DNA from: Epithemia pelagica
Lineage: Eukaryota > Protista > Bacillariophyta
Reading direction: 5' to 3'
DNA length: 64,000 nt
Assembly (NCBI GenBank): GCA_946965045.2
Contig: OX337239.1
Coordinates: 248,001-312,000 of the forward strand
Shown: piece by piece, positions 19,466 through 57,853 of the stretch
How positions within the stretch are numbered: position 1 is the stretch's first letter
Layout of the letters: every line of letters starts with the position of its first letter
The notes under the pieces: generated by a model
Told to the model about the DNA's origin: nothing
Database searches by the model: none
What the model saw: only the letters and a program-made list of their open reading frames with translations
Position numbers and translations under genes: made by a program

Positions 19466-19507
<42 letters not shown>

Positions 19508-39423: not shown

Positions 39424-41352
39424 ATGGCGGAGGACCACGACACGAAGAAGGACGCTCGCATCCAAGAGTTGGAAGCACGGATTGTCGAACTCGAGCAGGT
39501 GGCCCGTCTATGGTCGTCGTCGTCACAGACAACGACCGGCCAGCCGAAAGTCACGTCCAGTACTACAACAAGGACCACCGAGAACGAGACGGCGGACAAA
39601 GGCCCTTCTCCTACTCGAACGGAACCGCCGCCCGACGAGACGACTCGACCCGACCATTTTCAATCGCAACTTTCTTCGTGGCAAATCGAACGATACAGTC
39701 GTCCCTTGTTGTTGCCATCCTCGACCACATTTGGTGGTGTGGCTGGTCAAGTGGCCTTGAGTCAATCGTCCGTCCTGGTGGTGGGAGCGGGAGGGATTGG
39801 CAGTACCGTTCTCTTGTATTTGGCCGGAGCCGGTGTGGGTCAGTTGGGCATTTGCGATCACGATTGTGTGGAAGTGGCCAATTTGCATCGTCAAGTCTTG
39901 CATTCGACACTGACCGTCGGATGGAACAAGGCCCGGTCGGCCCAGTATCGCATTCAACAATTGAATCCCCACGTGTCGTGTACCCTCTATACCAAGGAAC
40001 CCGTCCATCATGGCACTGTCGAAAGCATGATTGAACCGTACGATTGCATTGTCGATTGTTCCGACAATCGATTCACACGCTATCTCCTCAATGATGCCTG
40101 TGTCCTGGCCCACAAACCATTGGTTTCGGGCAGTGCCTTGGGAACCGAAGGACAATTGACCGTCTATTGGAACCAGAACCACAACCAAAACAACAACCAA
40201 AACCACAACAACAACAACGACGACAAGGCGCCATTGAATGCGGTCGATCAGGCCCTGCAATCATCCACGGAACAACGATCCAATCCGTGTTATCGGTGTT
40301 TGTATCCCTGTCCCAGCAACACAACGACACCTGCTGGATCGGTCCCTCCCGTCACGGGCCGTTCCTGTTCGGATGCGGGAGTCTTGGGACCCGTCCCCGG
40401 GTTGATTGGTATTTTGCAAGCCGTTGAAGTCCTCAAAGTCTTGACCCGAAACACGACAAGCATGGACAAGGACAAGGCCAGCAGCAGTACGGAGGCGTCG
40501 CCTCGTAGTACTATTGCCGGGAACATGGATCAACGCATGCTTCTGTACGATGCCATGGCCACGTCGTTTTTGAGCATTCAAAAACCACGACAGGCCCAAC
40601 CCCATTGTCTCGTGTGTGGCAAAACTCCAAGCATTCGATCCATGGCGGACAGTTTGGACAATTTGACGCGCCATTTAAAAGAAGCCGGACCCTATCAAAA
40701 AGTACTACAACAACGCCAACCACCATCCCAACCAGCAGCGTCCAACCCTCCATTTCCACAAGTCACGGCGGTCGAATACAATCGCCTGTACGAAATCAAA
40801 CGACAGCGTTCCAAACAACAACAACAAAAGGCGAGTTCCCCAACAGGCAAGGATGACACGGATCCCCAACCATCTCCACTTCACAAGAAGCAAAAAGTCC
40901 ACGAACAAAGCGACCGCACAAGTCAACAGCCACCACAAGACGACAACGACACAACGACTGCCAACCAAGATACTCATATTCTTCTGGATGTTCGCAATGC
41001 CGAGCAGTATGCATTGTGTGCCTTGCCCGGGTCGGTCAACATTCCCCTCTCCCAATTGTCGAAGCGATGGACCGAACTGGTCGCCCTGGCCACCACCAAC
41101 TCGTCGTCGTCTCCGAATGGTGGTAGTCCGAAACCCATTTATTGCATGTGTCGTCGCGGATTCGCATCCGTGGCGGCCACCAAACTACTCTTGGCCAAGA
41201 AACAGGAACAACAAGAACAAAACGGTTCATCCAACGACAAGGACGACAAACAACCCGAAACCAAGACTCTATTGAATTCGGAGATTATCAATGTCCAAGG
41301 AGGATTGGATGCCTGGCGAAGGACAGTGGATCCAACCTTTCCGAAGTATTAA
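39424..41352 (+). CDS. MOCS3: Adenylyltransferase/sulfurtransferase MOCS3/UBA4 (MoeB/ThiF + rhodanese)
   Basis: ERYSR, VLVVGAGGIG, NLHRQ, DCSDN, CYRCLYP, CSDAGVLGP and CLVCG. Rhodanese domain LLDVR..CRRGFAS..GGLDAW..VDPTFPKY. Confidence 0.95.
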   Translation: MAEDHDTKKDARIQELEARIVELEQVARLWSSSSQTTTGQPKVTSSTTTRTTENETADKGPSPTRTEPPPDETTRPDHFQSQLSSWQIERYSRPLLLPSSTTFGGVAGQVALSQSSVLVVGAGGIGSTVLLYLAGAGVGQLGICDHDCVEVANLHRQVLHSTLTVGWNKARSAQYRIQQLNPHVSCTLYTKEPVHHGTVESMIEPYDCIVDCSDNRFTRYLLNDACVLAHKPLVSGSALGTEGQLTVYWNQNHNQNNNQNHNNNNDDKAPLNAVDQALQSSTEQRSNPCYRCLYPCPSNTTTPAGSVPPVTGRSCSDAGVLGPVPGLIGILQAVEVLKVLTRNTTSMDKDKASSSTEASPRSTIAGNMDQRMLLYDAMATSFLSIQKPRQAQPHCLVCGKTPSIRSMADSLDNLTRHLKEAGPYQKVLQQRQPPSQPAASNPPFPQVTAVEYNRLYEIKRQRSKQQQQKASSPTGKDDTDPQPSPLHKKQKVHEQSDRTSQQPPQDDNDTTTANQDTHILLDVRNAEQYALCALPGSVNIPLSQLSKRWTELVALATTNSSSSPNGGSPKPIYCMCRRGFASVAATKLLLAKKQEQQEQNGSSNDKDDKQPETKTLLNSEIINVQGGLDAWRRTVDPTFPKY

Positions 41353-42175: not shown

Positions 42176-42630
42176 TGTTGTTTTTCACTACTGTCGAGTA
42201 ACGAAAAAGAGCTCTTTTGCAAAATTGTGTGTTTCTAGATTATCGTGTGCAAGCTATGAATCGCTCCTGCTCATGCGTTGAGCGTTGACTCGTAGATTGG
42301 TGCGTTGATCGACCAAATTGGCGGTCCCAATTGTTTATGGACGACCTTGCTGCCTCTTCTGGGCTTCGTGGCTCCCTAAGTGGCGTCCGCTTACTTAGGA
42401 GCCAGTACCGTTATTGCTCTGGCCATGGGAGTCGTTGTTTAGAGCGGCATGAGTGTTACATAGCCGTCGTCCAAATCCCATGTTGAGATGCGTCGTTCGT
42501 CTTTGTTGATTTGTGATTTGTGAGAGGCGGCGGTTCAATGATGCGTTGGGCGTGTTGTGTCATGGGAATTCTGTCTCTGTCCCCATTGTCCCCCACGTGT
42601 AGTTATGCCCTTGCGTACAGTATTTGAACA
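42176..42630 (-). repeat. 3' LTR (455 bp)
   Basis: Identical by eye to 48009-48023 joined to 52173-52612, except g42626 vs c52608. Confidence 0.97.
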
Positions 42631-42637
42631 CTCCCTC
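42631..42637 (-). promoter_or_regulatory. Polypurine tract (GAGGGAG) abutting the 3' LTR
   Basis: The minus strand reads ...GTGAGGGAG|TGTTCAAAT, as expected for a copia PPT. Confidence 0.8.
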
Positions 42638-42666
42638 ACAGAGCGGTATTGTCAGGACTACCAGGA

Positions 42667-45600
42667 CTACCAGCCCATGATAGATTTGCGATGTCGCTCG
42701 AACGTATCCTTGTCCAAGGCTTTGGTGAAGATGTCGGCAGTTTGTAGCTCAGTATCACATGGTAGTATTGTGATCTGTTTCTGTTCCACATATTCTTTGA
42801 AGTGGAAGAGTTTTGTACACAGATAGCGTGTTCGAGGACAATATTTGTGGACGGTTGCTAATTTGAATGCTCCATTGTTGTCCTCAAACGCTCGGCAATG
42901 CACTCTTGGTTGCGTCGATATGACCTTGTATCCCCGCGTTTTCATTTCCTTGGTGATATGCATCAGTGGGATGACCGTCCGTAGTGACGTCGACAGACTA
43001 ATGATCTCGGCCTCGGTTGTGGAAAGAGCAATCTCAGTCTGTAATTTAGAAGCCCACACAATAGGGCAGCCCCCGTAGAAGATGATATAGCCGGTACGAG
43101 ATCGTGCCATATCCGTCCTGGGCATATCAGTTTTGTTGAAGTTCCCACAAAAATCCGCATCGGCATAGACATCGAAGTTGGCATCTTCTTGTGGATTCAG
43201 CAGTATGCCGAGAGTACGGGTCGACGCAAGATAGCGTCCGATTTGCTTGACTGCTCTTCCGTGTATTTGCTTTGGATTTGCTGCAAATCTCGCGCATTGG
43301 TGCACGGCATACGAAATGTCCGGTCGTGTACTTTTCTCGAGGAAGTTCAACTTCCCAATCACAGAGCAATAATGGAAGTGTCCGTCGAATGGGTCACCGT
43401 CGTCATCTGAGCGCATCTTTACTGTACTTGCTGCTGGTATGTCTTTTCCTTGGGCGTCCTCCGGCAATCGTAAGTCATCGAGAATCGAATCAATTAGTCG
43501 TGTCTGGGATAGATGCATCTGACCCGATTCCTGTTTTGTGATATGGACCCCTAAGAAATCTTCAACCCCGTCTTCATATGTCATCTTAAGCCCGATCTCT
43601 TCTAACTTGGCGATGATGCGATTCAGTTCTTCTGGATCCGGCCCTGTAAGAATTGAGTCATCTGTATACAATATGTATATGCTTTGGCCGTGATAAAACA
43701 GTCATTCGTCATGAGAGCTTTGTGTGAATCCTGCCTTCTCGAGCTGTTGTACCAGATGTTTGTTCCATACACGTGCTGCTTGCTTCTGTCCGTAGTAATT
43801 ACGCCGAATTTTGAGTCCATAGTCTTCAGCCTTTTGTTCACCCTTAGTGTCGAAGGTAAAAGCCTTTGGAGCCTCCATGTACATATCCGTCTCGGCCATT
43901 GCTTGGGTGTACGCTAGGACGTAGTCGACCTGTTTAATAGCCCATCCTTGCGCCAGAGCGGTCGTTAGAACATATCGTACAACAGGCCATTGGACAACAG
44001 GGGCATAGGTCTCCCAATAGTTGACCCCCTTTGTTTGTCCGGACCCATCAAAAGCTAGTCGTGATTTCCACTTGTAAATTTCCCCGGTCTCTAGCCTGCG
44101 CTTCCGCATGCAGCTCCAGACAGCGCGAGTAATATAGCTACCGGGAGGAATGTCTTTTCGGCGTACGATCTCCCACAATCCATTTTCAGTGTGATCTCTG
44201 ACTTCCTTTTGTGCGGCCTTGATAAATTCGTGGCGATCTGGTTGTTGCATGGCTTCGTGCCAATACATAACGTCAGGATTCTTCTGTGCTTGCGCCGTCA
44301 TGCTCACGATGCCTGGGAGAGCAATAGCTAGTTCCCCCAATGGATTTAGGTCGTCGCCGAGTTCTGCCATGTATTCTTGATATCGTGTTGTCGGTCTTGG
44401 CTCCCTTTGTGACCGTCGGATACCAGCTCCCTCATGCACGGGGATATTTGGTACGGCATCTCCCTCATCGTCTCTTGTCGGTGTAGCCTGATCTTGGTCC
44501 ACTATCTCCTCGTTGTTGTCTACCTCCCTCATGGGTGCGTCTAGATTGATAGCTTTTGCTTGTTTGGGTCGTGCTGTTCCGCTCGTCCGTTTGCTGAATC
44601 CCGCGCGCTGTTGCCAATAAGAGATTGGTTGGGCTTCTCCAAAACTACGACGGATAGTCTCAAAGTTGTCGTCATAGTGCACATGGAACTGTGGTGACGA
44701 TAGGCCCGATGAAAGGGACAAAATAAGCCCAATCGTCCTTGCATGTTGCGCCGAGTAAGCCAGGAAGATACCAACCCGCGATCGTTCGGACCACTTCGGT
44801 AGGCCCTTTCCAGCTTGAAGTTTGTTATCCAGCACATAACTTGGGCATCCGAAGGTATGTGCATTTCGGATGTTGAATCGCACAGGGGAACCGGAGAAGA
44901 GTTCAATCGGTGTCTTGTCTTTATGTTTCTTCATAGGAGCTTCGTTAAACATGTCTGATGCATACCGAACGGCATACGGCCATAGGTTCGTTGTGATTGC
45001 TGTGGGCCATCGTCGGTGTGCATGCAATAGCATAGTTCTTGCCGAGTCTTGTAGATCGCGTATCCGACGTTCGGCCATGCCACTCTGGAAATGAGCGTTG
45101 ACGCCACTGAAAGTCAGTCGCTGGCCTTTGCTCGCGACTGCTTTTCTAAACTCGTTGTCCGCGAAAATCCCATTGTCGGCATGATAATGCTGGATAGCCA
45201 CCCCATGGGTTTCTGCCCATGACTCGAATCTCTCCTTAGCTTCAATAGTATCAGTAGCTGAGGTAGACCGCTGTAGATGTACATAGCCGATTCCCGAGAA
45301 GTGATCCACGAAAACAGTTGCAACGCGATATCGTTCTCGCGTGGGAGTACCGCGCATGTGTGCAATATAACCAGGCGTATTCGAGATGAGCTGGTCCACT
45401 GACACGCATTGACCGGGGCGCGTCATTGTATCTAAAGTTCCTTGCGATCCCTTGACTCGCCATGGTTTCTTCGTCGCTTTGCCGTACAGGCATGCAGTGC
45501 ATGCTGGAACTGCACATGATCCCAGTCGCCTTGGTAATGCTCCTTGGCGTGCCATGGTTTGGATCTTTGCCATTGATAAATGTCCGAGTCGATGGTGAGT

Positions 45601-46704
45601 GCGAAGGAGTTCAGCTGTTGGACTTTCATGCGGCACTTCTTCTTCGTTTGGTATCACATGCACCACTTTTTCCGTATCGAATAAAAAATCTGTCGTCAAT
45701 GGCGTGTCTCGATGTGGAAAGTATTGCTCGTTGTGTTCGTCATCCATGTCCGTCCGGTCCTCGAGACTCCCTTCGTCGTCACTTGTTCTTGGTACGTTGT
45801 CTTCCTGTGTGGCGTTGTCATCGTCTTCGATCACATTTGCCTCACTAACAATCGGTGGATTGTTGCCATCTTCACAGATTTTACAACAAAAGCTTTGGTA
45901 GTGGGTCATTCCGGTGGCCGTGGAGAACTCTCCCACATTGGTGCCTCGCCGATTCAACGGAATCGTTCGTTTGCTCGTTCCTTGGTTCCATTCCAGGGTA
46001 ATTGTGTTGTCAGTGGTGAAACATCGGGTACCATGCGGCTTCGGTCGGTGATCTCGTGCCACTTGCGCCCAGTGTTGCGGGGAAAGGAGTCGATGTGACG
46101 TGGATGGAATATAGAATGACCCGGGGAGCACAATGCGGTATACTTGCCCATCGTCGTCTTCGATGTCCCATTTGATCGTCGTGGAGTACACCTTGGTCTT
46201 GTATAGTCCAGCAATTCCCTTTATTTTGCGTTGAATTGGTGTTGGAGATGTCAAGCAATCGGTGATATCGTGGGTGATTGATGCTGTGGCACAGTTGTCG
46301 ATGAAGAGAGGTTTGCTGTCCGAGTCAAATCGGACCGAATGCGCCTTGACCAGTTTGCTTGCCACCGGAGCTGCAAGTATCGTGGTCATGCACAGTCCTT
46401 TCATGAGGCTCGAGTTCCACTGTTTTCGTCGTCTCCTGGTTGCTGGCGATCTTGGCCTTGGTCTATATCTGGGTGGTGGAATGGCTGCATCAAGTATTGC
46501 CAGGCTGTTGGCCATCATGGTCGATATCGTGGTCCATAAATAGTCGATCCATCTTGCATTCGTGGCTGGAGCAGTAGTAGTTGTAGCTTCATCATCATAA
46601 CCTACTAGGACATACAAGTAAAGAGTTGTTGTCGCTAGTAAGATATAGATGAGCTGTTCGAAAGTCTTGGTGAACAGCCCGAGGAGTGACCTCGGGTCTG
46701 GTTG
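42667..46704 (-). pseudogene. pol: copia pol (protease, integrase, reverse transcriptase, RNase H) with one premature stop
   Basis: PR: LFIDNCAT. IN: HHRLGH..CTAC, VSVDQL, VFVDHFS, HADNG, AERRIR. RT: WKSRLAFDG, QVDYVLAY, YGQKQA, YTDD. RH: ADADF..TEAE..EDN..ADIFTK. In-frame TGA at 43704-43702 (SSHDE*LFYHG, where Cys is expected); the frame continues to 42667. Confidence 0.93.
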
Positions 46705-46707
46705 TCA
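46678..46707 (-). promoter_or_regulatory. Putative programmed stop-codon readthrough signal between gag and pol
   Basis: TGA CAACCAGA CCCGAGG-TCACT-CCTCGGG: a CARYYA context followed by a 7-bp GC-rich stem-loop after an 8-nt spacer. pol continues in the gag frame. Confidence 0.7.
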
Positions 46708-47964
46708 TTCTTCATCCGAGGACTCTTCTTGGGCAGGGAGATCAGCCAAAGCATTTGCCAAACGGAGTGCCGGGGTGGTTCCTTCTTTTCCCGTATCCGC
46801 GTGCGCTGCGTCATACGCTTTCTTCTTGTCTCCAGTCAATCCGCGTCCGCTGCACGTGGCTGAGGTATGGTTCTTGTTGAGAGACCATTTCTCGTGCCAC
46901 TTGCACCAATAGTAGGTCTTGCCGTTCACTTCTTTCACTTCTGGACCTCCCTCAGGCGGACCAGTGGTTTGCCAAGCTTCTTTGAGTCCCTCTTTGTCCT
47001 TAGTCTGTTTAGCCTTGCCGGTCTTGTTGTTGCTACCAGTGCTACCTTCATTGCTTTGTGCAGAACGTCCCTTTGCCATGCGTTTCACCTGGGCCTCAAG
47101 GGCAATAATCTTCTGGTCGCGCTCCGATAGGGACTGCCATTTCTTGGCTTCCACTAGTGCCTGGTACTTAAGCCGTGCCCAATCCATGAGTTGCGTGGGA
47201 GTTAGGTTCGGCGAATCTCCTTCTTTGTATGCGTTCTTGCGACGCCTGATCATTTCCAGAAAGTTCTCGTCGTTCACCGTTTCATATGCCTTGAATAGGT
47301 TCGGGAGGAGGTCGAGGGTCCGTTCCCCACGTGCACTTAGGCCCTACAATGTTTCTTTCACGTACGAGTTGAACTTAATAATGTCTCCGTTGAAGTCTGC
47401 GATATGGATGTGAAGGTCCGACAGACGCTGGCGTAGCACCATTACGGTCGCTTCGGTATCCACATGAGCCAAGGAAATGATGACCTTGAGGAGCAATGGC
47501 CCGACACCCTTGTTGTCCACGATGAATTCGTCGCGTCGGAGATTGACTTGTGCCCTCGCTTCTTCGTTTAACGATGCCATGAGACACATGTAGGACATGT
47601 AGGAGTTCTGCGTGATGCGATTCTGTCCGAGGAAGCTGTCCACGTAGTCGCGCACTTGTCGAAGGGAAACTCGTCCGTAGGCTTGAGTAAGGAGATGAGT
47701 AGGAGCAGCTGGAGGAGCTGGTCCTGCTGCAGGAGGGACCACGATATGTTCCGGAATGGAGAATGTGCTAGTCCAAGATTGCTCGACGATGCGATCTTGA
47801 AACGAATCGAGGAAAATCTTGAGTCCCTCCGCATGGAGATCGTAGAGATCTCCGCCATCAAAAAGTCCTGTCGTCGCTTGCTTGTATAACTTCGAGCCTG
47901 CCGCGGTCGTAAAGTTGATTACGTTGTTCGCGTTGGCGTTCGCGGGAGAGATTGCAAAAGCCAT
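46705..47964 (-). pseudogene. gag: copia gag with one internal TAG
   Basis: ORF 47964-47344 and ORF 47277-46705 are in the same frame, separated by TAG at 47346-47344 (KETL*GLSARG). C-terminal CxxH..H....C knuckle variant YWCKWHEKWSLNKNHTSATC. Confidence 0.88.
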
Positions 47965-47994
47965 GGTCGACGATCAGAGATGCTGTTGTTTACA

Positions 47995-48008
47995 GCGCAG
48001 AGGAAGCG
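47995..48008 (-). promoter_or_regulatory. Primer-binding site, complementary to the D-arm of initiator tRNA-Met (putative)
   Basis: Directly follows the 5' LTR end. The plus strand GCGCAGAGGAAGCG matches eukaryotic tRNA-iMet nt 10-23 (GCGCAG[C/T]GGAAGCG) at 13/14 positions. Confidence 0.6.
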
Positions 48009-48023
48009 TGTTGTTTTTCACTA
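48009..48023 (-). repeat. Inner 15 bp (U5 end) of the 5' LTR, separated from the rest of the LTR by the nested element
   Basis: TGTTGTTTTTCACTA is identical to 42176-42190. Confidence 0.93.
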
Positions 48024-48451
48024 ACTCCATATCAGACTATGTAGGTAGTTTTGCTCACAATTTTATTTTACTGTAGGATTTTTATTGTACGAGCGGGAAG
48101 TAGTTTTCAACCGAAAATCGTGCGAATCGCGCGAAAACGAGCGGGGCGAGCAAACCAAGGCGAAAAAAGCGCACCACGAAAAACCAACACGAAGCAACCA
48201 ACGGAACGAGAAACGAAACCAACAAGGGTAACAAAGTAGCGACACAGGACAAGGAAGAAGAAGCAAGGTTGTGTGAGAATAAGCATGTGATGCAACAATA
48301 AAACAAAGACCATCGCAATGCAACAACTTACCGGTATCTAGAGACCAACCAACTGTGGGAGACATCGATAAGTGTCTGTCATCGAAGAAGCAAAAATGAG
48401 AAGATGAAGGACAATCACAATAGAAACAAAAAAAGACTCACCAATCAGCCA

Positions 48452-51400
48452 CTAGTGGGACTTTTTGGATCCCTTGTGCTTCTTCTTTTTCGACTTCTTC
48501 GAAGTCGTGGTGGCAGGGTTGGTGTATTGAAAGGGTAGCTGCATTCCCCCAGTCATCATAGGAGCAGCCATGGCATTCGGCTGAACAGCAAAAGAATTGA
48601 GTAGGGGTTGTTGTTGCTGTATGGAGGGGAAGAGCTGTTGTTGCATCATCTGTTGTTGTTGCTGCTGCTGCATCATCCACCACATCATTTGTTGTTGGTT
48701 AAAATTGAGGTGGGGAGGAGGAACGACTTCCACCACGTCGTCATCCGAATCAGAATCGGATGAGGATGGAGATGGAGGAGCAGTTTTTTTCGTTGATGCC
48801 GTGTTAGGCGTCGTTGTCGGCTTCGCCGCCACCGTCGTCGTTGGCTTCGCCGCCACTGTCGTCACCATCGTCGTCGGCTTCGCCATCGTCGTTTCCATCG
48901 TCGTCGGCTTCACCTCCGGACTCTGCTTCGTGCTGGGGACCAAGGGAGGTGATCCCCAACCACCCTTCTCTACCACTACCACGTCGTCGTCGCGTTTACC
49001 AGGAACTGGGGGGCCAAACTCATCGACATTGACTGCGTTGACAACACCAATTGGAACCTTGGGCGAAGCAGCACCAAGATCACGTCCTAGTAGAAGGTAT
49101 TAAGAAGCAACTTGAGTGAGAAACAGAACGAGGCAACAATGAAACAACAACCAAACTTACCATTTGGAGAGGGAGCCTTTTTTCGCCCTTGTACCAATTC
49201 GCTTTGAGAGCTTTTGCGAACGAATCCGTCGTGAATTCTTGGTACCGAAAACTTGCACGGTCAGTTTTGTGACGGCCAAAGGCATTGACCATGTGTTGTG
49301 GAACGCCCGCATCTGCCACGTTGGAAATACCAGTACGGCGACCAGTACGAGCGGTTGCACGGTGCCACTCCGGGTGGCCGCACCTCTTGAAGAGGATCTT
49401 TGCATTGTCGTTGGGCCAGTTCTTACCGAGAGCGCCCGAGGGGCGCATGGGAACAGAAGGTGACTTGCCTTCGGCAAGGGCCTTCTCGTACGTTCGCTTC
49501 GCTTCAATCGTGGTGTCGCGGACCATCTTCGTTCCTCCCCACCAATTGTCATTGGGTGACGGACGTTCTTTTCGTTCCTTTTCCGTTGCGATATTCAAAA
49601 AGAGAAGCCCTGTCCAGCCAGGTGGTAGTCCGTTCTGGATCCAGTGACGGAGAATCTTGTACGTGCACATGTCATCGTCTGGATCATCAACGATCATGTT
49701 CGGCACACGTTCTTCGTCCGATCGCAGAGTCGGGTTTGAAAGCGAAAGCTTCGCCGTCTTCTCGCGCTCACACTCGCGTAGTTTGTATGCCGCGAGACCT
49801 GCCACATCGCCATACTCTTGCGGGAGAGCAGTGATGTGGATCACATCAGTGATCAACAACCGGTAAATCTGGGTGACGTGAGAATCAGAACGCATGTCAG
49901 AAACTTGCCAGTCGATCCACCAATCAACATGAATGGTTGAAACTTACCTCCATACCACGAGTTCCCCAACAGCGAGAGCAAAGGTACACTACCATACGCA
50001 GACAGTCCAATGCAATCTGGAACGGACTCATTGGCGGTTGCGCCTTTGTTCGCAACATGACGTCGTCGTTGAATTCAATCAACCCCTTGTTCGGACGACG
50101 ACCGTAATCTGGACGACGTTCGGCTTCCTCGCGAAACTGGTTTGCACAGTACGCTTGGAAAGACCCTTGCATGCTTTGCATGTGAGTCATGCTATACTGG
50201 ATGCCATGCGAACGGAAGATCGCAAAGATTTGGTCCAAGATTTTTTTCACAACGTTTGGTTGGTAAGCCTTTCCCTCCTTGGTCTTCAGATTGGAAACAA
50301 AAACAACCAACGCATCATTCAGAACTTGTTCTTTGTCTTCTGTTTTCGAGCCACGGAGCATGGGAAAAAGCCGAAAGAGTCTCTTCTCTGGGTTGTCGGG
50401 GTCGACGACGTATTCAGTGAGCACGTAGAGGGCAGGGTGCTTCGAAAGGATTTGGAGGAAGCGCTCGAAGGAACGGGCTTTATCTTTTTCATAGCCCACC
50501 GTATTCATTGACAACTGTCGAAGGTTCCTGGTGGCATCCCCGAAGATGGACCTCGACAAGGTGCAATACGAGGCCAAGGCGGCAAGATCGTTGGGGGAAT
50601 CGAGCACTCGGGGCAGGGAATTCGACGACAACTCGGCCAGCGTAATCTTGTTTGACTGGTGGTCGAAAACCAGGGGGCGGCGTTCACAAGCAGCCTTGGC
50701 TGCAACAGCAAAGGAAGGTTCATTGGCAGCTCGTGGAGGCGGAGGAGGAAGTTCCACGGTGGGATCGACGACAGCACCAGATGGATTGACACTGCCATGA
50801 GGCCGCCTGAATACGAACAATCAACCAGTGAGAAGAAATTGACACAACAATGCAGGAACACAAAGCAATGACAACAATGCAACAAACTTACGGCGCGGAC
50901 GGGTTGGTTGATGAGTCTTCCTGGTTGGTGGAAGTAGGTGGATGCGGGAAGACAGCAGCCGACAACCTGTCAATGGAATGAGAAAACCAATCAACAGGTT
51001 AGACCAATGGTTGCAATCAACAAACGAAGCAACAATCAACGATAGAAACAACAAACTTACCGATTTGGAATGGATGGTGGGTCTTGTTCCTCATTGTTGG
51101 AAGGACGGGGAGGTGGTTTCTTGTTTGGTTGGATGCAACCAAGAGGCTCTCCGGTTCGTTTTCCAAGCACCGACGGAGGTGCTTGGTTCTCTTTATCGGA
51201 ACAATCCACAGGAGGATCGGAAACGGCGGAAGCGGCCGCTGCAGCGGCTCTTGCATGGCGACGAGTCTTCATGGCGGCCTTTCGACTTTTGGATTCCAAC
51301 GGATTATGAAGAATGAACGAGTAGAAACGAGTGTGAGATTTTGAAATGCCAAGTGCGACCGGGAAGAATTTGGGAAGAAAAGGAAGACCACCATGGCCAA

Positions 51401-51665
51401 AATGGCGTTCCATTGCGTGAAACAAGCCGAAATCGCAACAATCAGACGTAAAAACTTACCATTTGGAAGAGCGTTTCATGATCCATGGGTCACTGGAGAG
51501 ACTGTGCTCCTCAGACTCTCCAGTGCACTCAAGGAACCTCGGAACGTACTCGTGGTTCCAATTCCACATGTTGTCATCCTCGAAGACGAACATCATCGAG
51601 GTGGAGGAATCCGAAGAGCTGGATGAGTCATCCTCGCTTGTAGTTACTAAGTCTATAATATTCAT
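48452..51665 (-). CDS. Multi-exon tyrosine recombinase, Crypton/DUF3504-like
   Basis: Exons 51665-51460 (uncertain), about 51286-51061, 50966-50892, 50806-49948, 49868-49161, then a low-complexity last exon. All five donors are GTAAGT, and phases agree across introns 2-4. Motifs: ALVVFVSNLKTKEGKAYQPN (Crypton-like), WGTRGME|IYRL (Arg), KTAK (Lys), RTGR (HxxR position), FGRHK (His), FRY (Tyr). First and last exon joins are uncertain. Confidence 0.85.
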
Positions 51666-51720
51666 GGCTACAAACAATGGTTTAGATAGGATGGAGCCGT
51701 CGAAAGCACAATCTCATCGT

Positions 51721-51793
51721 CTTCCTTCCTTCCTTCCTTCCTTCCTTCCTTCCTTCCTTCCTTCCTTCCTTCCTTCCTTCCTTCCTTCCTTCC
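51721..51793. repeat. (CTTC)n microsatellite, about 18 units, upstream of the recombinase gene
   Basis: Perfect CTTC repeat. Confidence 0.97.
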
Positions 51794-51957
51794 TGGTTTT
51801 CGAGAACGAGAGGGAAGGAACGTCAACGAGATCGGGGGGCCTAAGTAATAGTCACAACGGATGGTTTGAAATTTTGCTACTAGTGCCCCTGTTGTAGGCT
51901 GTCTCAGCGACATTTCGGGCAATGTCTAGTTTGTTAAATAACAACGGGGCGGTAGCC

Positions 51958-52166
51958 ACTACCTACATAGCTAGATATGGAGTAAGCATATTAATTCCCT
52001 TGTGTCTGGCCGTCCTTTCGCGTCGGGCGCCCGGCTTGTCGGGAGAATGCCTCGTCGGGAACACGTCTCGACGGGCATTCGCCCTCCTTGACGTGTTCCC
52101 TCCTCGTCATTCTACCCTTCGCGCCGGGCGACCCTCCTTAAAAGGACTAGACACCGGAAATTAATA
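51958..52166. other. Internal complementary region plus 180-nt multi-helix terminal hairpin of the Crypton-like element
   Basis: 51958-51983 is complementary to the left terminus 48024-48049 (23/26). 51989-52076 pairs with 52081-52166 through seven nested helices. Confidence 0.85.
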
Positions 52167-52172
52167 TCACTA

Positions 52173-52612
52173 CTGTCGAGTAACGAAAAAGAGCTCTTTT
52201 GCAAAATTGTGTGTTTCTAGATTATCGTGTGCAAGCTATGAATCGCTCCTGCTCATGCGTTGAGCGTTGACTCGTAGATTGGTGCGTTGATCGACCAAAT
52301 TGGCGGTCCCAATTGTTTATGGACGACCTTGCTGCCTCTTCTGGGCTTCGTGGCTCCCTAAGTGGCGTCCGCTTACTTAGGAGCCAGTACCGTTATTGCT
52401 CTGGCCATGGGAGTCGTTGTTTAGAGCGGCATGAGTGTTACATAGCCGTCGTCCAAATCCCATGTTGAGATGCGTCGTTCGTCTTTGTTGATTTGTGATT
52501 TGTGAGAGGCGGCGGTTCAATGATGCGTTGGGCGTGTTGTGTCATGGGAATTCTGTCTCTGTCCCCATTGTCCCCCACGTGTAGTTATGCCCTTGCGTAC
52601 AGTATTTCAACA
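52173..52612 (-). repeat. Outer 440 bp of the 5' LTR
   Basis: Matches 42191-42630 with one mismatch; ends in CAACA followed by the TSD. Confidence 0.97.
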
Positions 52613-53002: not shown

Positions 53003-56000
53003 ATGGAGGTTGATGAAGAGAGCATCAGTGCGATGCAACAACAAGAACAAAATCGAAGCAGTATTGACGAAAACAACAGTCACATTGAAATTGCCAATCT
53101 GGAGAATGAAAGCGTTTTGTTGGATCCGGCCATGAGCGTCAACGACGAAAGCACCATAGGGAGCACTCTCCCGTCCTACAGAACACAAACTCGACAAAAC
53201 GGAGAGGAACTGGGCCAGGATGAGTCTGTATCATCCCCTGTTTCAAGAAATGCATCCTACGGAAAGCCACTCATGTTTCAATCGCTTGGAATGTATGGCC
53301 GTGAGGGTGAATCCGCGAGTCTGAATGAATCTTTGGACCGCTTAATAAATACAAAAGGTCATCGAGAATTGGTCCTCATCTCGGGAACTAGCGGCACTGG
53401 TAAAACAAGGCTGGCACATTCCACGAAAGAGTTGATACTCCAGAAGACCACTGATGGACTCTTTGTTCAAGGAAAATTCGATGCAAGCTCCAACGGAAAG
53501 AATAACCCGTTCTCAGGCATCACAGAGGCAGCTTCTCAAATCTGTTGCAAAGTACATGAAATGGAAATGGATGATCCTGACTGGTTCAGAACGTTATGCG
53601 AAAGACTCAGACATGAGATTGGACCCCAGCTCGAACGCCTGATCAAAGGTATAGTTCCAGTTTTGGGCGATCTTTTGAAACAGGACGGTTCCCCGACTGT
53701 TGTGGAACAAGATGCTTCACCGACTCCAATGAATGACACGAGTCAACACCAACTCTACTATGCTTTTGCGCGTTTCTTGCGCATCGTCTCCGCCAAGTTC
53801 AAACCACTTATTTTGGTTCTCGATGATCTTCATCGAGCATCTCATTCTGCACTGAAGCTGGTCGATGTCATCATGACTGTTCACGAGAATGAAACCCCTT
53901 TGTTGGTGGTGGGAACATATCGGTCAGATGAGATTGATGATTCAAATGTGGTTGATGAAGCAAACGAGCTAACTCTAACTCGATTGATCACTGAGTTGAA
54001 AAGGAAGAGTGTTGATGACCAGGACTTCCAAGTAGAGGAAATTGCGATCACAGATTTAGACTACGAATCTGTGAGACAAATTGTTTATGCCTTGTTCGAC
54101 CATCATGATCCAACTAACATCAATGATTCCTTGCGAACCACAGAGTTGGTCCATCGCTGTCTTGTGAATACTCATGGAAACCCGTTTTTTCTACTTCATT
54201 ATATGAAGATACTGTGGGTTCGGCAGCTGCTGCGATTCAATCAGTCTCGTAACGTTTGGGAATGGGAAGAAAATGAGATTTTCCACCAAGAATGGGTCCG
54301 TGCAATGCAAGAACAAGAACAAACTCGAAGTAGCACCGGCGAAAACAACAGTCCGATTGAAAGAGTGACTATGAAGAATGAGAAAGTTTTCTTGGATCCA
54401 ACCATGAGGAGAAACGACGAAAGCACTGTAGATAGCACAATCACATCCTACGGAATACGCACTAAGCAAAACGGAGAGGATTTTCTTCCTGATGGTGCTG
54501 CGGCTACCCCAAGTCGAGAACAGCAGGAATCAGTATCAACACGAGTTTCACGAAAGGAACCCTACGGAAAGCAGCTTCAGTTCAGTTCGCTTGGAATGTA
54601 TGGCCGTGACGAAGAATCCGCAAGATTGAATGAATCGTTGGACCGCGTAATGAATACCAAAGGTCACCGAGAACTGGTTCTTATCTCTGGAACAAGCGGA
54701 ACTGGTAAAACAAGGCTGGCGCATTCCACGAAAGAGTTGATGCTCCAGAAGACCACTGATGGACTCTTTGTTCAAGGAAAATTCGATACAAGCTCCAACG
54801 GAAAGAATAAACCATATTCCGGCATCACTCAGGCTGCTTCTAAGCTCTGTTGCAAAGTACATGAAATGGGAATGGATGACCCGGAGTGGTTTGGGGCGCT
54901 CTGCGAAACTCTCAGGAGTGAGATTGGAAACCAGCTCGAACGCCTCATCAACGGTATAGTTCCAGTTTTGGGAGACCTTTTGGAACAGGACGTTTCCCCG
55001 ACTATTGTGAAACAAGATGCTTCATCGACACCAATGAATGACACGAGTCAACACCAACTCTACTGTGCTTTTGCACGTTTCTTGCGCATCATCTCTGCCA
55101 AGTTCAAACCTCTGGTTTTTGTTCTCGACGATCTTCATCGGGCATCTCATTCTGCACTGGAACTGATCGATGTCATCATGACTGATCACGAGAATGAAAC
55201 CCCTTTGTTGGTGGTGGGAACATATCGATCAGATGAGATTGATGATTCAAACGTGGTTGATGAAGCAGACGAGCTAACTCTATCTCGAATGATCACTGAG
55301 TTGAAAAGGAAGAGTGTTGATGACCAGGACTTCCAAGTAGAGGAAATTGCGATCACAGATTTAGACTACGAATCTGTGAGACAAATTGTGAAGACCTTAC
55401 TTGATCTGAACGAACCATCAATGGACAACACTGATGCCTCACGAATCTCGGAGTTAGCCCACCTATGTCTCGTGAAAACTCATGGAAACGCTTTCTTCTT
55501 ACTAAATTTTATGAAAATTCTGTGGCTTCGGCAGCTGCTGCAATACAACCAGTCTCGCAAGGTATGGGAATGGGAAGAAAGTGACATCAACCAGGGCACG
55601 AGTATGACTGATAACGTGGTACATCTTCTAAATGCCAGATTGGTGGAGCTATCTCAAGAATCCTATCTTACCAAGATTCTTCAACTTGCTTGCTGCTTCG
55701 GGTCGACGTTTTCTGTGTCAACAATGAAACTAGTTTGGACGAACTTGCATGGACTTCCACCGGACCAGCGGTCGGAAGTTGTATTGGAAGAGGGACTGAA
55801 TGCTCTTGAAAACAACGATCTAATCGTACTGACCAGAAACGCGAACGACTTGTCGGATAGACCAATGTACGTTTGGTCTCACGACAAAATCCAAGATGAA
55901 GCCGTAAAGCTTTTCCCTGATGAAAGCGATCGAATCGCCTTTGGGAGCGAAGTAGCTGAAATTATCTTGAGACGCCTGGATCAACTAGAAAAGTCAGAAA

Positions 56001-57853
56001 GAGATTCCGCGATGTTGCTGGCAGTTAAACTTCTGAACGACGATTGCTCGAACATGGTGAATGAAATCAGCTGGCTCACGTTGGCCGAGCGAAATTATGA
56101 AGCTTGTGTCAAAGCTATATCAATGTCTCATTTCCACGCTGCAGCAGACTACGCTGAAAAAGGGATCGCCTTACTGCCGCAATCCTCCTGGACAACACAC
56201 CCAGACCTGACTCTGAAGCTTTACTCAATCGGAGCCAAGGCGCAGAATATTATTGGAAATGTTCGCAAGATGGAACGGTACTTCATAGAAGTTATGAATC
56301 GTGCGGGTGTGAATGTTGAAGATACTTTTATCGTGCGGTACGCCTACGCTGACAGTTTCATGACAAGAGGCGAGATTAAACAGGCAATCGCTATTTTGAC
56401 GGACACTCTGAGCCTCTGCAACTGCCGGTTCCCGTCAATGACGATCGCTATATACTTGGGTATCATTTGGAAGATCTTCCGAATCAGAATGACAAGGAAT
56501 CCGGTCGAAATGTCAAATTTGTCCGCAATGACTGACACCAAGAGAATCGAAATGATGAAGTTTCTGGACAAGTTGGCGACTTGTTTGTACATGAACCATG
56601 AACCCCTCCTACCACTGATCGTTTTTCGAAGCTTGGATTACACCCTCAAGTATGGATACTGCGACTATTCTCCGGTTGCCTTTGCAGCCATGGCTATCGT
56701 TTTGACAGGTGTCGTGGGTGACTTTAAACGGGGTTGTGAGTTCGGTGAACGAGCATTGGCACTCATGAGGAAGATGAAAGGTGAAGAAACCAAGGCCCGT
56801 ACATTGTTCTTGGTTAATGCTTTGGTGTTTCCATGGACGAAAAAGGCAGAAGCCCTTCTTGCACCTTTGACGGAGGCATATGAGATTGGACTTAAGACTG
56901 GGTAAGTGCTCACCGTACATTCCAAAGTTCGTTTGCCTCCTACTCTCATGTTCTCCGGTCTGTATGGTATGTGAAGTGACATCGAGAGTGCCACCTGGGC
57001 AGTGCACAATCGAATGATGTTGAAATATATCATCGGCCGTCCTTTAAGAGAAATGGAGAAAGATCTTCAATGGTATTCGAAACGAATGCGAGACCTTAAA
57101 GGCAATCATGCTTTCTGGGTTCGTTCGGTTTCGAGGGTAATTCGGCAAGTATACCTCAATCTCATGGGTCTTGACAATACGGAGGAGCCAGCAAGCCTAG
57201 TGGGAGAGGCCAACGATGGGAAGAATAGCAAACGCTGCCTGGAACATCCCTTTCTCAAGCCGGGGTATGAGGCCTACGAATGCATGATTATGACTTTCTT
57301 TGGATACTATGTAAGACAGGCCAATTGGACCGTAGACCACCAGGGAATGGACGAGTTTTCCAAAACAAACGTTGCGAATCCTGATCAAATGTGGGCGAGT
57401 TTCTTGAAAGCTGTGTGCCTGTACGCTGCCTTTCGGATCACAGGTGATAAGAAGTACCTCAAAATGGGAAATCAGTTCCGATCCAAGATCAAGCAATGGG
57501 TGAAAATGGGCAACCCGAATGTAACGCAATACGATTTGCTGCTGGATGCCGAATCATGGGCAGGGAAAGGAAAACAGCACAAGGCACTTGAATGTTACAA
57601 GGCCGCCATTGATGAGGCCGAAGGTCGCAATTGCCATCATGACGCTGGTCTAGCATGTGTACGACTTTGCGATTATCACCTCAGAATCACAAAGAATGTG
57701 GACGAGGCACGGATTCATTTCGAGAAAGCTCGTATGAACTGGTCGAAATGGGGTGCCCATGGCGCAGTGGAACAGTTGGGAAGAAAGTACAATTCTCGTT
57801 TCAAACAGTTGCCCCCCGAAGTACATTTATCCATTGCTCCATCAGGAAAATGA
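53003..57853 (+). CDS. Large STAND/AAA_16-like P-loop ATPase with tandemly duplicated NTPase module and helical (TPR-like) C-terminus; two exons (53003-56901, 56977-57853)
   Basis: Two copies each of MYGR, ISGTSGTGKT (Walker A), VQGKFD, LVLDDLH (Walker B), GTYRSDE, THGN.FF and WEWEE. The 75-nt intron 56902-56976 joins LKTG|DIESATWAVHNR in frame; its AAG acceptor is inferred from frame. Confidence 0.88.

Follow-up and report, generated by a model that had tools for sequence, protein, structure and literature searches.

Cryptons are less well understood than any other class of eukaryotic DNA transposon and are classically modelled with a double-stranded circle. They have been described without terminal or structural features (PMC3212892, PMC13465315, PMC12130899), and reviews and surveys up to 2026 give them no structural features beyond direct repeats of 4–7 bp. 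CryptonS-1_PTri of the diatom Phaeodactylum tricornutum measures 4671 bp and has the terminal direct repeat CTGTAAG (PMC3212892). Active Cryptons excise cleanly and yet gain copies, and clean excision versus rising copy number is the question posed by their mechanism (PMC9977147). DIRS-1 cannot do without its internal complementary region (ICR), and a trinucleotide flanks DIRS elements (PMC7192593). An internal region that pairs with the ends of its element was previously known only from DIRS retrotransposons; here we describe one in an element that encodes only a recombinase. Integron attC and CTX-phage attP(+) are folded single-stranded substrates of bacterial tyrosine recombinases. Folded substrates of this kind are mentioned alongside bacterial tyrosine-recombinase elements capable of forming a circle out of a single strand (PMC9345347).

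Results

The element and its integration site

The window, the whole stretch of DNA analysed, comprises 64,000 nt of Epithemia pelagica (assembly GCA_946965045.2, contig OX337239.1, positions 248,001–312,000 of the forward strand). It contains a mobile element of 4.15 kb at about 48022–52173, whose gene is read from the minus strand. The element sits in an LTR of a copia-like retrotransposon, 12 nt in from that LTR's inner edge, and the retrotransposon has RVT_2 and gag_pre-integrase domains between its LTRs. Other sites in the same assembly carry eight more full-length relatives (family 1) and two mini-copies. In the alignment of copies, similarity stops at 48021 and 52172, that is, at the ends of the element. 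The following features define the site:

42176–42591, minus strand: sister LTR of the host Ty1/copia-like retrotransposon, with the unoccupied target site at ~42180–42200
48019–48024, minus strand: left TCACTA; CTA at 48022–48024 (TAG on the gene strand) is the conserved trinucleotide at which crossover is placed, and TCA at 48019–48021 is target DNA
52168–52173, minus strand: right TCACTA; TCA at 52168–52170 is the element's own (the same in copies L001 and L008), and CTA at 52171–52173 is the crossover trinucleotide

The sister LTR is 99% identical to 48009–48020 plus 52174–52573. The defined ends and this empty site bear out the view, first taken in a sequence-only reading of the locus, that the element is a discrete mobile unit. 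That reading had also proposed TCACTA as a 6-bp core. The direct repeat is real (48019–48024 and 52168–52173) and a single TCACTA is left in the empty site, but the conserved crossover core is 3 bp (TAG), not 6. Every copy ends in ...GGAGTTAG and starts with TAGT..., and TAG (gene strand; CTA on the plus strand) is all that both ends have in common across the family-1 copies. The window copy has 6 bp of element/target identity around the crossover, and its extra TCA is, on comparison of the termini, target/element homology. Paralogues of the L008 flank supply a second empty site, and the mini-element L001b forms with L001 a head-to-tail pair with one common TAG. The terminus and empty-site sequences place integration firmly as a site-specific crossover at the TAG trinucleotide (CTA on the plus strand). 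Long terminal repeats were not found in the element (repeat search and end comparison), nor were inverted terminal repeats, the Y/Y′ pairing described below being the sole inverted match between the two end regions.

The recombinase gene and its product

48452–51665, minus strand: tyrosine-recombinase gene, about 860 aa, with the ATG at 51665 and the stop codon at 48452–48454

GTAAGT intron donors at 51459, 51060, (50891), 49947 and 49160 give at least four introns in the window copy, the exon ends upstream of 50807 being approximate. L001, L008, L007 and L002 share the 49947 intron at the corresponding position, and intronless relatives align continuously across it (49947–49870); the distant relatives L012–L014 are intronless. 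The catalytic region is divided between the exon at 49948–50807 (box-I Arg in GTRGME) and that at 49161–49869 (K, RxxR, H, Y), and the C-terminal tail is Q/P-rich. Arg (GTRGME), Lys (EKTAKLSL), RTGRR, GRH and the Tyr of FRYQ are aligned across the family, in which Arg or some other residue takes the place of the HxxR His.

Searches by sequence gave little. Pfam returned nothing above cutoff for the exon pieces (exon 4 had a weak QRICH1 match) and no domain for any element ORF on either strand, weak Phage_integrase matches in 9 of 65 family members were all below cutoff, and PDB sequence searches, whether queried with a single exon or the family profile, found no recombinase. In profile comparison with hhalign, the family matched the DUF3504 protein P0127 at 97.9% probability (E = 3e-13) and a bacterial integrase at 89.8%; DUF3504 is Crypton-derived.

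An earlier AF2 model of full-length P0039, built with 10 sequences, had a pLDDT of 42 and matches that were not significant. Modelling residues 325–725 of P0039, a relative 25–29% identical to the window exons and not the window protein itself, with an alignment of 65 sequences yielded a pLDDT of 92 and a pTM of 0.83, and this model has the two-domain tyrosine-recombinase fold (core-binding plus catalytic). Its best 50 PDB matches are tyrosine recombinases (XerH, Tn1549 Int, IntI, XerA, a staphylococcal integrase, Cre and its variant Tre, and Flp), as well as QRICH1 and two other DNA-bound proteins, phage SroF among them. Match probabilities were mostly 0.9–1.0, lower for Flp and SroF, and the TM-score reached 0.6 (Cre); the IntI–attC structure, 2a3v, is also among the fold matches. 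This modelling indicates that the element protein is, by predicted fold, a tyrosine recombinase. The intron-containing tyrosine recombinase without reverse transcriptase (RT) noted from the sequence is thus upheld by the GTAAGT introns, the fold of the relative and the lack of RT in the copies. No RT or other domain turned up in full-length relatives from other diatoms (858–1027 aa) either, and the RVT_2 close by is part of the host copia element.

The internal complementary region and the terminal hairpin

Within the element, an internal region is complementary to both termini side by side:

48025–48049, minus strand: Y, the 25 nt inside the 3′ end (gene orientation), complementary to and co-varying with Y′
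51717–51795, no strand assigned: (CTTC)n microsatellite separating the start codon from the hairpin/ICR, differing in length among copies
51958–51983, minus strand: Y′, the ICR segment that is complementary to the opposite element end (48024–48049)
51984–51988, minus strand: ICR core, AAGCA on the plus strand and TGCTT on the gene strand, a conserved altered junction core
51989–52076, minus strand: X′, the inner hairpin arm, with CCCGAC(G/A)AG motifs about 16 nt apart
52081–52167, minus strand: X, the outer hairpin arm and element 5′ end (gene orientation), with (C)GAGGAGGG motifs

The left-end pairing joins 48021–48049 to 51958–51986 and is complementary at 25 of 29 nt (86%; repeat search), which confirms the internal reverse complement of the left end that had been reported first. 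In the window the left-end 26-mer occurs only at 48024–48049 and, inverted with three mismatches, at 51958–51983; 100 shuffles gave no match, and none was expected by chance. At the right end, the 8 nt of pairing noticed earlier (TATTAATT) are real but are a small part of it. The pairing of 51989–52076 with the right end at 52081–52167, pieced together from the local alignment given below and the repeat 52041–52076/52081–52116 (repeat search), makes the whole right end (51989–52167) a single imperfect hairpin of ~180 nt, with a predicted DNA fold of −51.6 kcal/mol and z = −7.7. The left-end complement directly adjoins the hairpin. Some 320 nt separate the hairpin from the start codon downstream, and Rfam has no match to it. 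The first reading had missed this hairpin of right end and ICR together with its conserved CGAGGAG/CGACGAG motifs.

When 51900–52060 was aligned locally with the reverse complement of the predicted circle junction, the match ran from 51958 to about 52036. Since the hairpin X/X′ is followed by Y′ (25–40 nt, complementary to Y), X′ and Y′ together copy the circle junction in inverted orientation with slight changes, and this copy is the ICR. An inverted junction copy had been recognized from the sequence, and both of its parts match; its core, then taken for five unrelated bases, is instead an invariant variant, since the ICR reads CTTACTCC in all lineages where the exact junction complement would be CTAACTCC. 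Just past the CTTACTCC position the ICR is one base shorter than the junction complement. In the predicted fold of all lineages, with the pairing derived by hand from their sequences, a T.T mismatch precedes the AG of TAG and a one-base bulge comes just after TAG.

Joining the termini in sequence establishes that the crossover site of an excised circle would lie in one arm of a ~260-nt imperfect palindrome. The natural junction at L001:3308–3575 has a predicted fold of −66.3 kcal/mol (z = −8.1), and modelled junction hairpins range from −58 to −95 kcal/mol; the junction itself has no dyad symmetry. No direct copy of either terminus was found in the window by repeat and motif search.

Copies and covariation

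The same assembly holds a divergent family 2 (L009–L011) with the same layout and unrelated end sequence. Its Y/Y′ is complementary at 24 of 29 positions; with two copies to compare, we left its exact crossover bases unassigned. All nine full-length family-1 and three family-2 copies are 4.1–4.6 kb long and lack RT, L001 exceeding the window copy by about 310 nt at the (CTTC)n microsatellite. Among family-1 lineages coding identity is 65–69% (down to ~65%), versus 79–89% at the termini. The mini-element L001b (383 bp) has kept hairpin, ICR and 3′ end and nothing else, and L006b is a second copy of its 5′ part, ended by the contig end.

Covariation of the ICR with the termini in other copies, the check proposed at the outset, was found at 11 of the 25 Y/Y′ positions, each with at least two Watson-Crick pair types. 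Own-copy Y/Y′ pairing was the maximum among 5040 permutations (2 ties), and for the X end against the ICR it was 1 of 720 permutations, in a test that excludes L002 (5′ end unalignable). In L005 the Y/Y′ pairing reaches about 39 nt. Absence of the complementarity from other copies had been named as grounds for refuting the first reading; it is present in all copies of the two families, so that the reading withstood this check. From these comparisons we conclude that selection has kept the Y/Y′ and ICR complementarity.

Three near-identical copies (the window copy, L001 and L008) have an identical 3-nt mismatch in Y/Y′, so that the termini are evidently not re-copied from the ICR in each cycle. 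Templating of the termini from the ICR was rejected on this ground, and also because the termini keep TAG and the ICR keeps the variant core. In L007 the exact complement of X stands in for a patch of X′. Across copies the inner hairpin hardly varies and therefore carries little weight for or against pairing. About half of the mismatches are G.A on the gene-sense strand, arranged as tandem GA/AG in the CGAGGAG/CGACGAG motifs, which are conserved in family 1 and family 2. These motifs can also be read as GACGAG direct repeats on one strand, which would be candidate protein-binding sites in duplex DNA. The distant relatives L012–L014 have the same motif words clustered beside or within a hairpin upstream of the gene, and ICR candidates in these single-copy relatives were too weak to count.

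A strand test by wobble pairs gave 32 G.T versus 27 A.C, with no bias toward either folding strand. Metagenome contigs scanned with the 16-mer GGAGGGTCGCCCGGCG yielded chance matches in unrelated contigs only, none of which fit the end profiles. Covariation of this kind is also expected from one protein binding both copies, or from gene conversion between inverted copies.

Discussion

Class of the element

The element is an autonomous member of a diatom DNA-transposon family that encodes only a tyrosine recombinase (Crypton-like). It shares with Cryptons the lack of RT or any other transposition enzyme (in the window element, the copies and the full-length relatives), short direct repeats at both ends of which one comes from the target, without terminal inverted or long terminal repeats, and introns in the recombinase gene, taken as a sign of DNA-based movement. 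It shares with DIRS1-like elements the internal region complementary to both termini and the same trinucleotide (TAG) at each end, one from the target. The DIRS1-like ORFs for RT/RNase H, methyltransferase and gag were not found in the element, and the split direct repeats of Ngaro, PAT and VIPER (A1 ... B1 A2 B2) are absent, the internal junction copy being inverted. Because of the recombinase fold, the absence of room for RT, the introns and the link to DUF3504, we classify it as a Crypton-like DNA transposon with a DIRS-style ICR.

Proposed mechanism and alternatives

Taken as a whole, the explanation we favour, by somewhat better than even chances, is a Crypton-like transposon whose ICR module acts by within-strand pairing. 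Judging from the predicted structure, our best inference is that this pairing would act in a single-stranded intermediate. With the element single-stranded or extruded, the ICR module would pair with sequence of its own strand and set both termini side by side on the ICR. TAG would then be flanked by the T.T mismatch and the one-base bulge, and the recombinase could join the ends at TAG (excision or circularisation) or take the folded junction as an attachment site; the altered core would prevent the ICR from serving as a second crossover site. We also considered, and rejected, a protelomerase-like cut at the palindrome centre, as the integrated ends do not lie at the dyad; because junction and ICR have different cores, a Flp-like inversion between the two seems unlikely.

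It is also possible that only the double-stranded circle is used, a reading we think unlikely though deserving of real weight. The ICR would be a second site for recombinase binding, inverted and dead at its core, and would help together with the GACGAG array to assemble or orient the synapse like the lambda Int arm or Tn3 res accessory sites, and the two copies would stay alike through one protein reading both or through gene conversion. This would suit motifs that recur in direct orientation on one strand at a spacing of about 16 bp, an inner hairpin conserved in sequence and not merely in pairing, an ICR core whose conserved difference from the junction core would block crossover between the two sites, and the replaced X′ patch of L007, as gene conversion would give. 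However, the complementary stretch of 25–40 nt is longer than a usual recombinase-binding element, and the junction lacks dyad symmetry of its own. Complementarity kept while 11 of 25 positions vary among lineages, and the whole sequence between families, fits pairing better, and GA opposite GA in both arms of one strand breaks the symmetry of a duplex palindrome and suits a fold.

We consider it improbable that the family is a DIRS-type lineage without RT/RNase H, copied through cDNA by an RT acting in trans, with the ICR completing and circularising single-stranded cDNA. The ICR and the flanking trinucleotide are DIRS hallmarks (PMC7192593), the distant relatives L012–L014 have no introns, and the genome is rich in RT-carrying copia elements. 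Yet the sequence-only reading's proviso that full-length relatives might carry RT/RNase H did not hold, with no RT in 12 full-length copies of two families or in the full-length proteins of other diatoms. The GTAAGT introns (four or more in the window copy, that at 49947 also retained in four others) argue against passage through spliced RNA; a transcript including arm X would need to start at the element's first base; there are no inverted terminal repeats, and the ICR is on the 5′ side rather than near the 3′ end. DUF3504, to which the recombinase profile is linked, is reportedly unmatched by DIRS and Ngaro recombinases (PMC3212892). A recent origin as a "deleted DIRS" likewise appears unlikely, because 12 full-length copies of 4.1–4.6 kb lack RT, coding identity among the family-1 lineages falls to ~65%, and the diatom relatives lack RT too.

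A regulatory hairpin (promoter, 5′-UTR structure or small-RNA source) with a secondary match to the far end would agree with strong conservation about 320 nt from the start codon. We rate it very improbable, as it would leave unexplained both the co-varying complementarity to the element's very end, 3.9 kb away, and the retention of hairpin, ICR and 3′ end by a non-coding mini-element, and the hairpin has no Rfam match. A chance inverted repeat or one-off rearrangement, such as the remnant of an inverted partial copy, could not have been excluded from one copy alone and can be dismissed given the empty shuffles and a structure that recurs, co-varying, in all copies of two families.

Within-strand pairing leads to a wider proposal, which we advance tentatively as falling short of even chances: the family would excise or integrate via a folded single strand, with the ICR holding the termini or forming the attachment site in the manner of integron attC or CTX-phage attP, and would move by copy-out; the ICR design would be part of the recombinase module, before or independent of reverse transcription, and the family a Crypton-like link to DIRS. 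If the folded-strand reading is true, these elements would be the missing Crypton-like link to DIRS retrotransposons. In any case the ICR, a DIRS hallmark explained by cDNA completion, can exist without any RT, which bears on the proposed origin of DIRS from a Crypton-like ancestor. The diatom family supplies a conserved cis module (TAG core, terminal hairpin and ICR), and this module, the natural 383-bp mini-element and the covariation make the transposition mechanism directly testable. In genome annotation, the module is a structural signature with which such elements can be found and delimited.

Comparison with known systems

The element resembles CryptonS in having a tyrosine recombinase as its sole enzyme, no RT, introns, a length of about 4–4.7 kb and a diatom host, and also in a C-terminal region without known domain and a family profile linked to DUF3504 proteins. 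It differs from Cryptons in its ~180-nt terminal hairpin and ICR and in reading RxxR for HxxR; no published description of a hairpin or ICR in Cryptons was found in the literature searched, which excludes Repbase reports and subscription journals. With DIRS-1 of Dictyostelium (PMC7192593) it shares two adjoining internal segments complementary to the termini, one trinucleotide per end, the same kind of recombinase and frequent insertion beside other copies. Unlike DIRS-1, it lacks RT, RNase H, methyltransferase, gag and inverted terminal repeats, and its gene has introns. Its ICR adjoins the 5′ terminus, with which it folds into a hairpin, whereas that of DIRS-1 is near the right LTR, and its ICR core differs from the junction, whereas the DIRS-1 ICR is exactly complementary.

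The predicted fold resembles attC and CTX attP in that the stem of an imperfect hairpin would serve as the recombination site, in its mismatched or bulged core bases and in placing the exchanged strand in one arm only, so that after integration the other arm would persist unaltered within the element. The attC and attP systems belong to bacteria and draw their single strands from conjugation or phage, whereas the diatom hairpin is far longer, its fold is predicted and the enzyme is element-encoded. The strand-biased circularising integrative elements of Vibrio (SEs; PMC9345347) likewise use tyrosine recombinases; they differ in being bacterial, in having several recombinase genes and in that no ICR or terminal hairpin has been described for them. 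SEs make a circular copy of one strand while the donor site stays occupied (PMC9345347), a possible way for an element such as that of Epithemia to gain copies.

Structure of the right end and of the internal complementary region

The element (about 48022-52173, gene on the minus strand) had been described from its sequence as carrying an internal complementary region (ICR) matching both of its ends. In the window copy, a repeat finder returned arms at 48021-48049 and 51958-51986 (29 nt, 86% complementary) and a second inverted pair at 51981-51999 and 52156-52174. The left-end 26-mer had one further match in the 64 kb, inverted and with 3 mismatches, and none in shuffled sequence. When 51900-52060 was aligned to the reverse complement of the predicted circle junction, the right-end match, previously taken to be limited to 8 nt, ran on to about 52036, and a repeat at 52041-52076 and 52081-52116 (repeat finder) prolonged the right-end pairing. 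The right 180 nt thus make up one long imperfect hairpin. These alignments and the shuffle comparison bear out complementarity to both ends, with an ICR of about 120 nt, not about 40 nt. Its parts and the outer hairpin arm are as follows (Y is the 3' end in gene orientation).

51958-51983: Y', complement of the left end, adjoining arm X'
51989-52076: hairpin arm X'
52081-52167: hairpin arm X

As single-stranded DNA, the right-end hairpin was predicted to fold with -51.6 kcal/mol (z = -7.7). No Rfam match was found in the element.

Ends, target site and copies

Searches with pieces of the protein yielded six relatives first and two more later, all in ENA assembly ERZ21939226 (L001-L008, family 1). 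At every locus, the limits of similarity to the window element lay no more than a few bases from 52172 and 48021. Read in gene orientation, each copy starts with TAGT(A/G) and ends with GGAGTTAG, with unrelated flanks. The insertion site of the window copy is an LTR of a Ty1/copia-like element, and the sister LTR (42176-42591, 99% identical) presents the empty site with a single TCACTA. At L008, paralogous flanks revealed a target that has only TAG in common with the element. The common ends together with these empty sites place the crossover core at TAG (CTA on the plus strand) instead of the 6-bp TCACTA of the sequence-only reading; in the window copy, target and element match over additional bases, hence the 6-bp repeat. 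The base preceding TAG in the target is usually a purine.

The host retrotransposon is young, since its LTRs are 99% identical; the recombinase element is inserted in its 5' LTR, 12 nt in from the inner edge, and both have the same orientation. The host and other neighbouring features of the window are listed here.

42176-52573, minus strand: host Ty1/copia-like retrotransposon, gag start at 47964
43705-46617: RVT_2 and gag_pre-integrase domains of the host
53003-56905, plus strand: 1300-aa ORF just past the LTR, with two AAA_16/AAA_22 ATPase regions and an NPHP3_N-like start
39424-41352, plus strand: MOCS3-like gene
17496-21287, minus strand: 1263-aa ORF with no Pfam match
18-21 kb and 33-37 kb: strongly negative AT skew (-0.2 to -0.38)

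The MOCS3 homologue has its nearest named relatives among raphid pennate diatoms (Epithemia, Entomoneis, Amphora and Nitzschia). Another contig, in an ENA assembly, carries an 89%-identical copy of the gene, perhaps from a second haplotype or else paralogous; some contigs of that assembly may therefore be allelic.

L001 and L008 were 96-99% identical to the window copy and occupy other sites. The diverged lineages (L002, L003, L004, L005/L006 and L007) were 65-69% identical to it in coding DNA and 74-89% in the termini. Full-length copies measure 4.1-4.6 kb each, differing in length mainly through a (GGAA)n run; this microsatellite, (GGAA)n/(CTTC)n, separates the ICR from the start codon and ranges from ~75 to ~390 nt in near-identical copies (window 51717-51795; L001:3800-4187). 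Two mini-copies accompany full elements.

L001:2970-3352: L001b, 383 bp, comprising hairpin, ICR and ~90 nt of 3' end and nothing else
L006:7873-7973: L006b, the first 101 nt of a second L001b-like copy, 96% identical

L001b is a non-autonomous mini-element lying head to tail with L001, with one TAG common to both. L006b begins ~59 nt past the end of L006 and is truncated by the contig end. Their positions beside full elements suggest that insertion occurs next to existing copies.

The 98.7% identity of L010 and L011 across 4522 bp (L010:3580-8101) delimits a second family within the same assembly, to which L009 belongs as a diverged member. Family 2 has a ~205-nt 5' hairpin with CGAGGAG/CGACGAG motifs, as in family 1. 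This hairpin is immediately followed by a segment that is complementary to the 3' end (L010, 24/29) and unrelated in sequence to its family-1 counterpart. The same two motifs occurred upstream of the ORF in intronless distant relatives from other samples, inside a ~160-nt hairpin in L013/L014 and interleaved in a predicted long stem in L012; these are single copies, so their ends cannot be set.

The recombinase gene

Pfam searches of the exons gave nothing above threshold and only a weak QRICH1 match. The family alignment contains the box-I Arg, Lys, RxxR in place of HxxR, His and Tyr. Across the whole family, the HxxR His is Arg or another residue (RTGRR, RSARR, RTCRR; window exon 49161-49868, minus strand; protein alignments A1 and A2), and all full-length members have a long Q/P-rich tail. 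An AF2 model of a relative (P0039:325-725, 65 sequences) reached pLDDT 92, and its best 50 PDB matches were tyrosine recombinases (XerH, Tn1549 Int, integron IntI, XerA, Cre, Flp and others), apart from QRICH1 and one DNA-bound phage protein (SroF). Weak profile matches included proteins that pass Pfam DUF3504 or Phage_integrase, and in hhalign the family profile scored 97.9% with a DUF3504 protein and 89.8% with a bacterial integrase. Crypton recombinases are the reported source of DUF3504, which the recombinases of DIRS and Ngaro are reported not to match (PMC3212892).

We found no RT, RNase H or other domain in any ORF of the element or its full-length relatives. This, with the structural matches of P0039, upholds the original description of an RT-less element with a recombinase: it is a mobile diatom element encoding a tyrosine recombinase. 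A profile search of 1.84 billion representative proteins returned only 126 relatives, the named ones being from the diatoms Entomoneis paludosa (transcript, 1027 aa) and Cylindrotheca fusiformis (858 aa).

The gene's introns are alike (TTG/CAA-rich, GTAAGTTTG...; 76-88% in pairwise comparison over 16-24 nt) in the following stretches.

48289-48312
49130-49153
50845-50891
51014-51055
51435-51455

This likeness may reflect the usual intron style of the genome or a related origin. Relatives from other samples have no introns.

Covariation of the ICR with the ends

One stretch of Y' reads ATGTAGGTAGT in the window copy, ATAAAGTTAGT in L002, ATGAAAGTAGT in L003 and ATGCAGGTAGT in L004/L005, and each variant is met by a complementary change in the 3' end of the same copy. 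Among seven lineages, 11 of 25 ungapped positions had at least two Watson-Crick pair types. Assigning each ICR to the 3' end of its own copy gave the maximum of all 5040 permutations, with two ties, explained by a 3' end that is identical in two lineages. When the outer 24 nt of the 5' terminus were compared with the ICR, the own-copy assignment was the best of 720. In L005, pairing reaches about 39 nt. The proposed covariation of ICR and termini thus holds in the other copies.

The window copy, L001 and L008 have the same 3-nt mismatch (TCTAGC against TCAGAC), so the ends are not copied anew from the ICR in each round of transposition. Instead, the complementarity is inherited and kept by selection, and occasional conversion possibly adds to its upkeep. 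Both families combine a terminal hairpin with an ICR, and selection acts on the complementarity of that ICR to both ends.

The ICR core, once regarded as unrelated bases, reads CTTACTCC in every lineage (exact junction complement, CTAACTCC), and the ICR is one base shorter than the junction complement just past the core. In a fold derived by hand from the sequences, GGAGT/ACTCC forms five pairs, followed by a T.T mismatch, two pairs over the AG of TAG, a T.G or T.A pair, a single bulged base 1-3 bases on, and a continuous stem. A T facing a T likewise occurs in family 2, at the third base counted from the 3' end. The ICR core is thus a conserved variant of the junction core.

Predicted folding of the hairpin on the two strands

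The consensus hairpin fold has 55 pairs, of which 7, mostly near the terminus and apex, persist despite changes in both partners; the inner hairpin is almost invariant. Mismatches between the arms are not random. In a two-arm alignment without credit for wobble pairs, G.A on the gene-sense strand accounted for 114 of 235, as tandem GA/AG, and G.T and A.C were equal (32 vs 27). The sense strand folded 3-9 kcal/mol better than the antisense strand in 6 of 7 lineages, in part owing to this tandem G.A pattern. At L007:3420-3630, arm X lacks an 18-nt piece, and X' has in part been swapped for the exact complement of X (CCCTCCTCG instead of CCCGACGAG), which looks like conversion or hairpin-templated repair.

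We infer that ICR/end pairing acts within one strand, where it would juxtapose the two ends for the recombinase. A duplex accessory site is the chief competing explanation: the hairpin motifs can also be read as GACGAG direct repeats ~16 nt apart, which could be a protein-binding array in duplex DNA.

Comparison with Cryptons, DIRS and other systems

Cryptons are described as having no TIRs or long repeats and as bounded by 4-7-bp direct repeats (PMC3212892), as in CryptonS-1_PTri (4671 bp, repeat CTGTAAG; PMC3212892, Additional file 1); papers of 2025-2026 describe them as without conserved structural features (PMC12130899, PMC13465315). Our literature search found no description of an ICR or terminal hairpin in Cryptons. 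Active Chlamydomonas Cryptons excise cleanly, yet rise in copy number (PMC9977147), and Vibrio SE elements with tyrosine recombinases form their circle from one strand only (PMC9345347). Retrotransposition of DIRS-1 requires an 88-nt ICR, of which 33 nt are the complement of one terminus and 55 nt that of the other, and a trinucleotide flanks DIRS elements, one copy being target-derived (PMC7192593). The window element is a Crypton by operational definition; it has the ICR and the trinucleotide in common with DIRS and departs from the DIRS definition in RT and ITRs.
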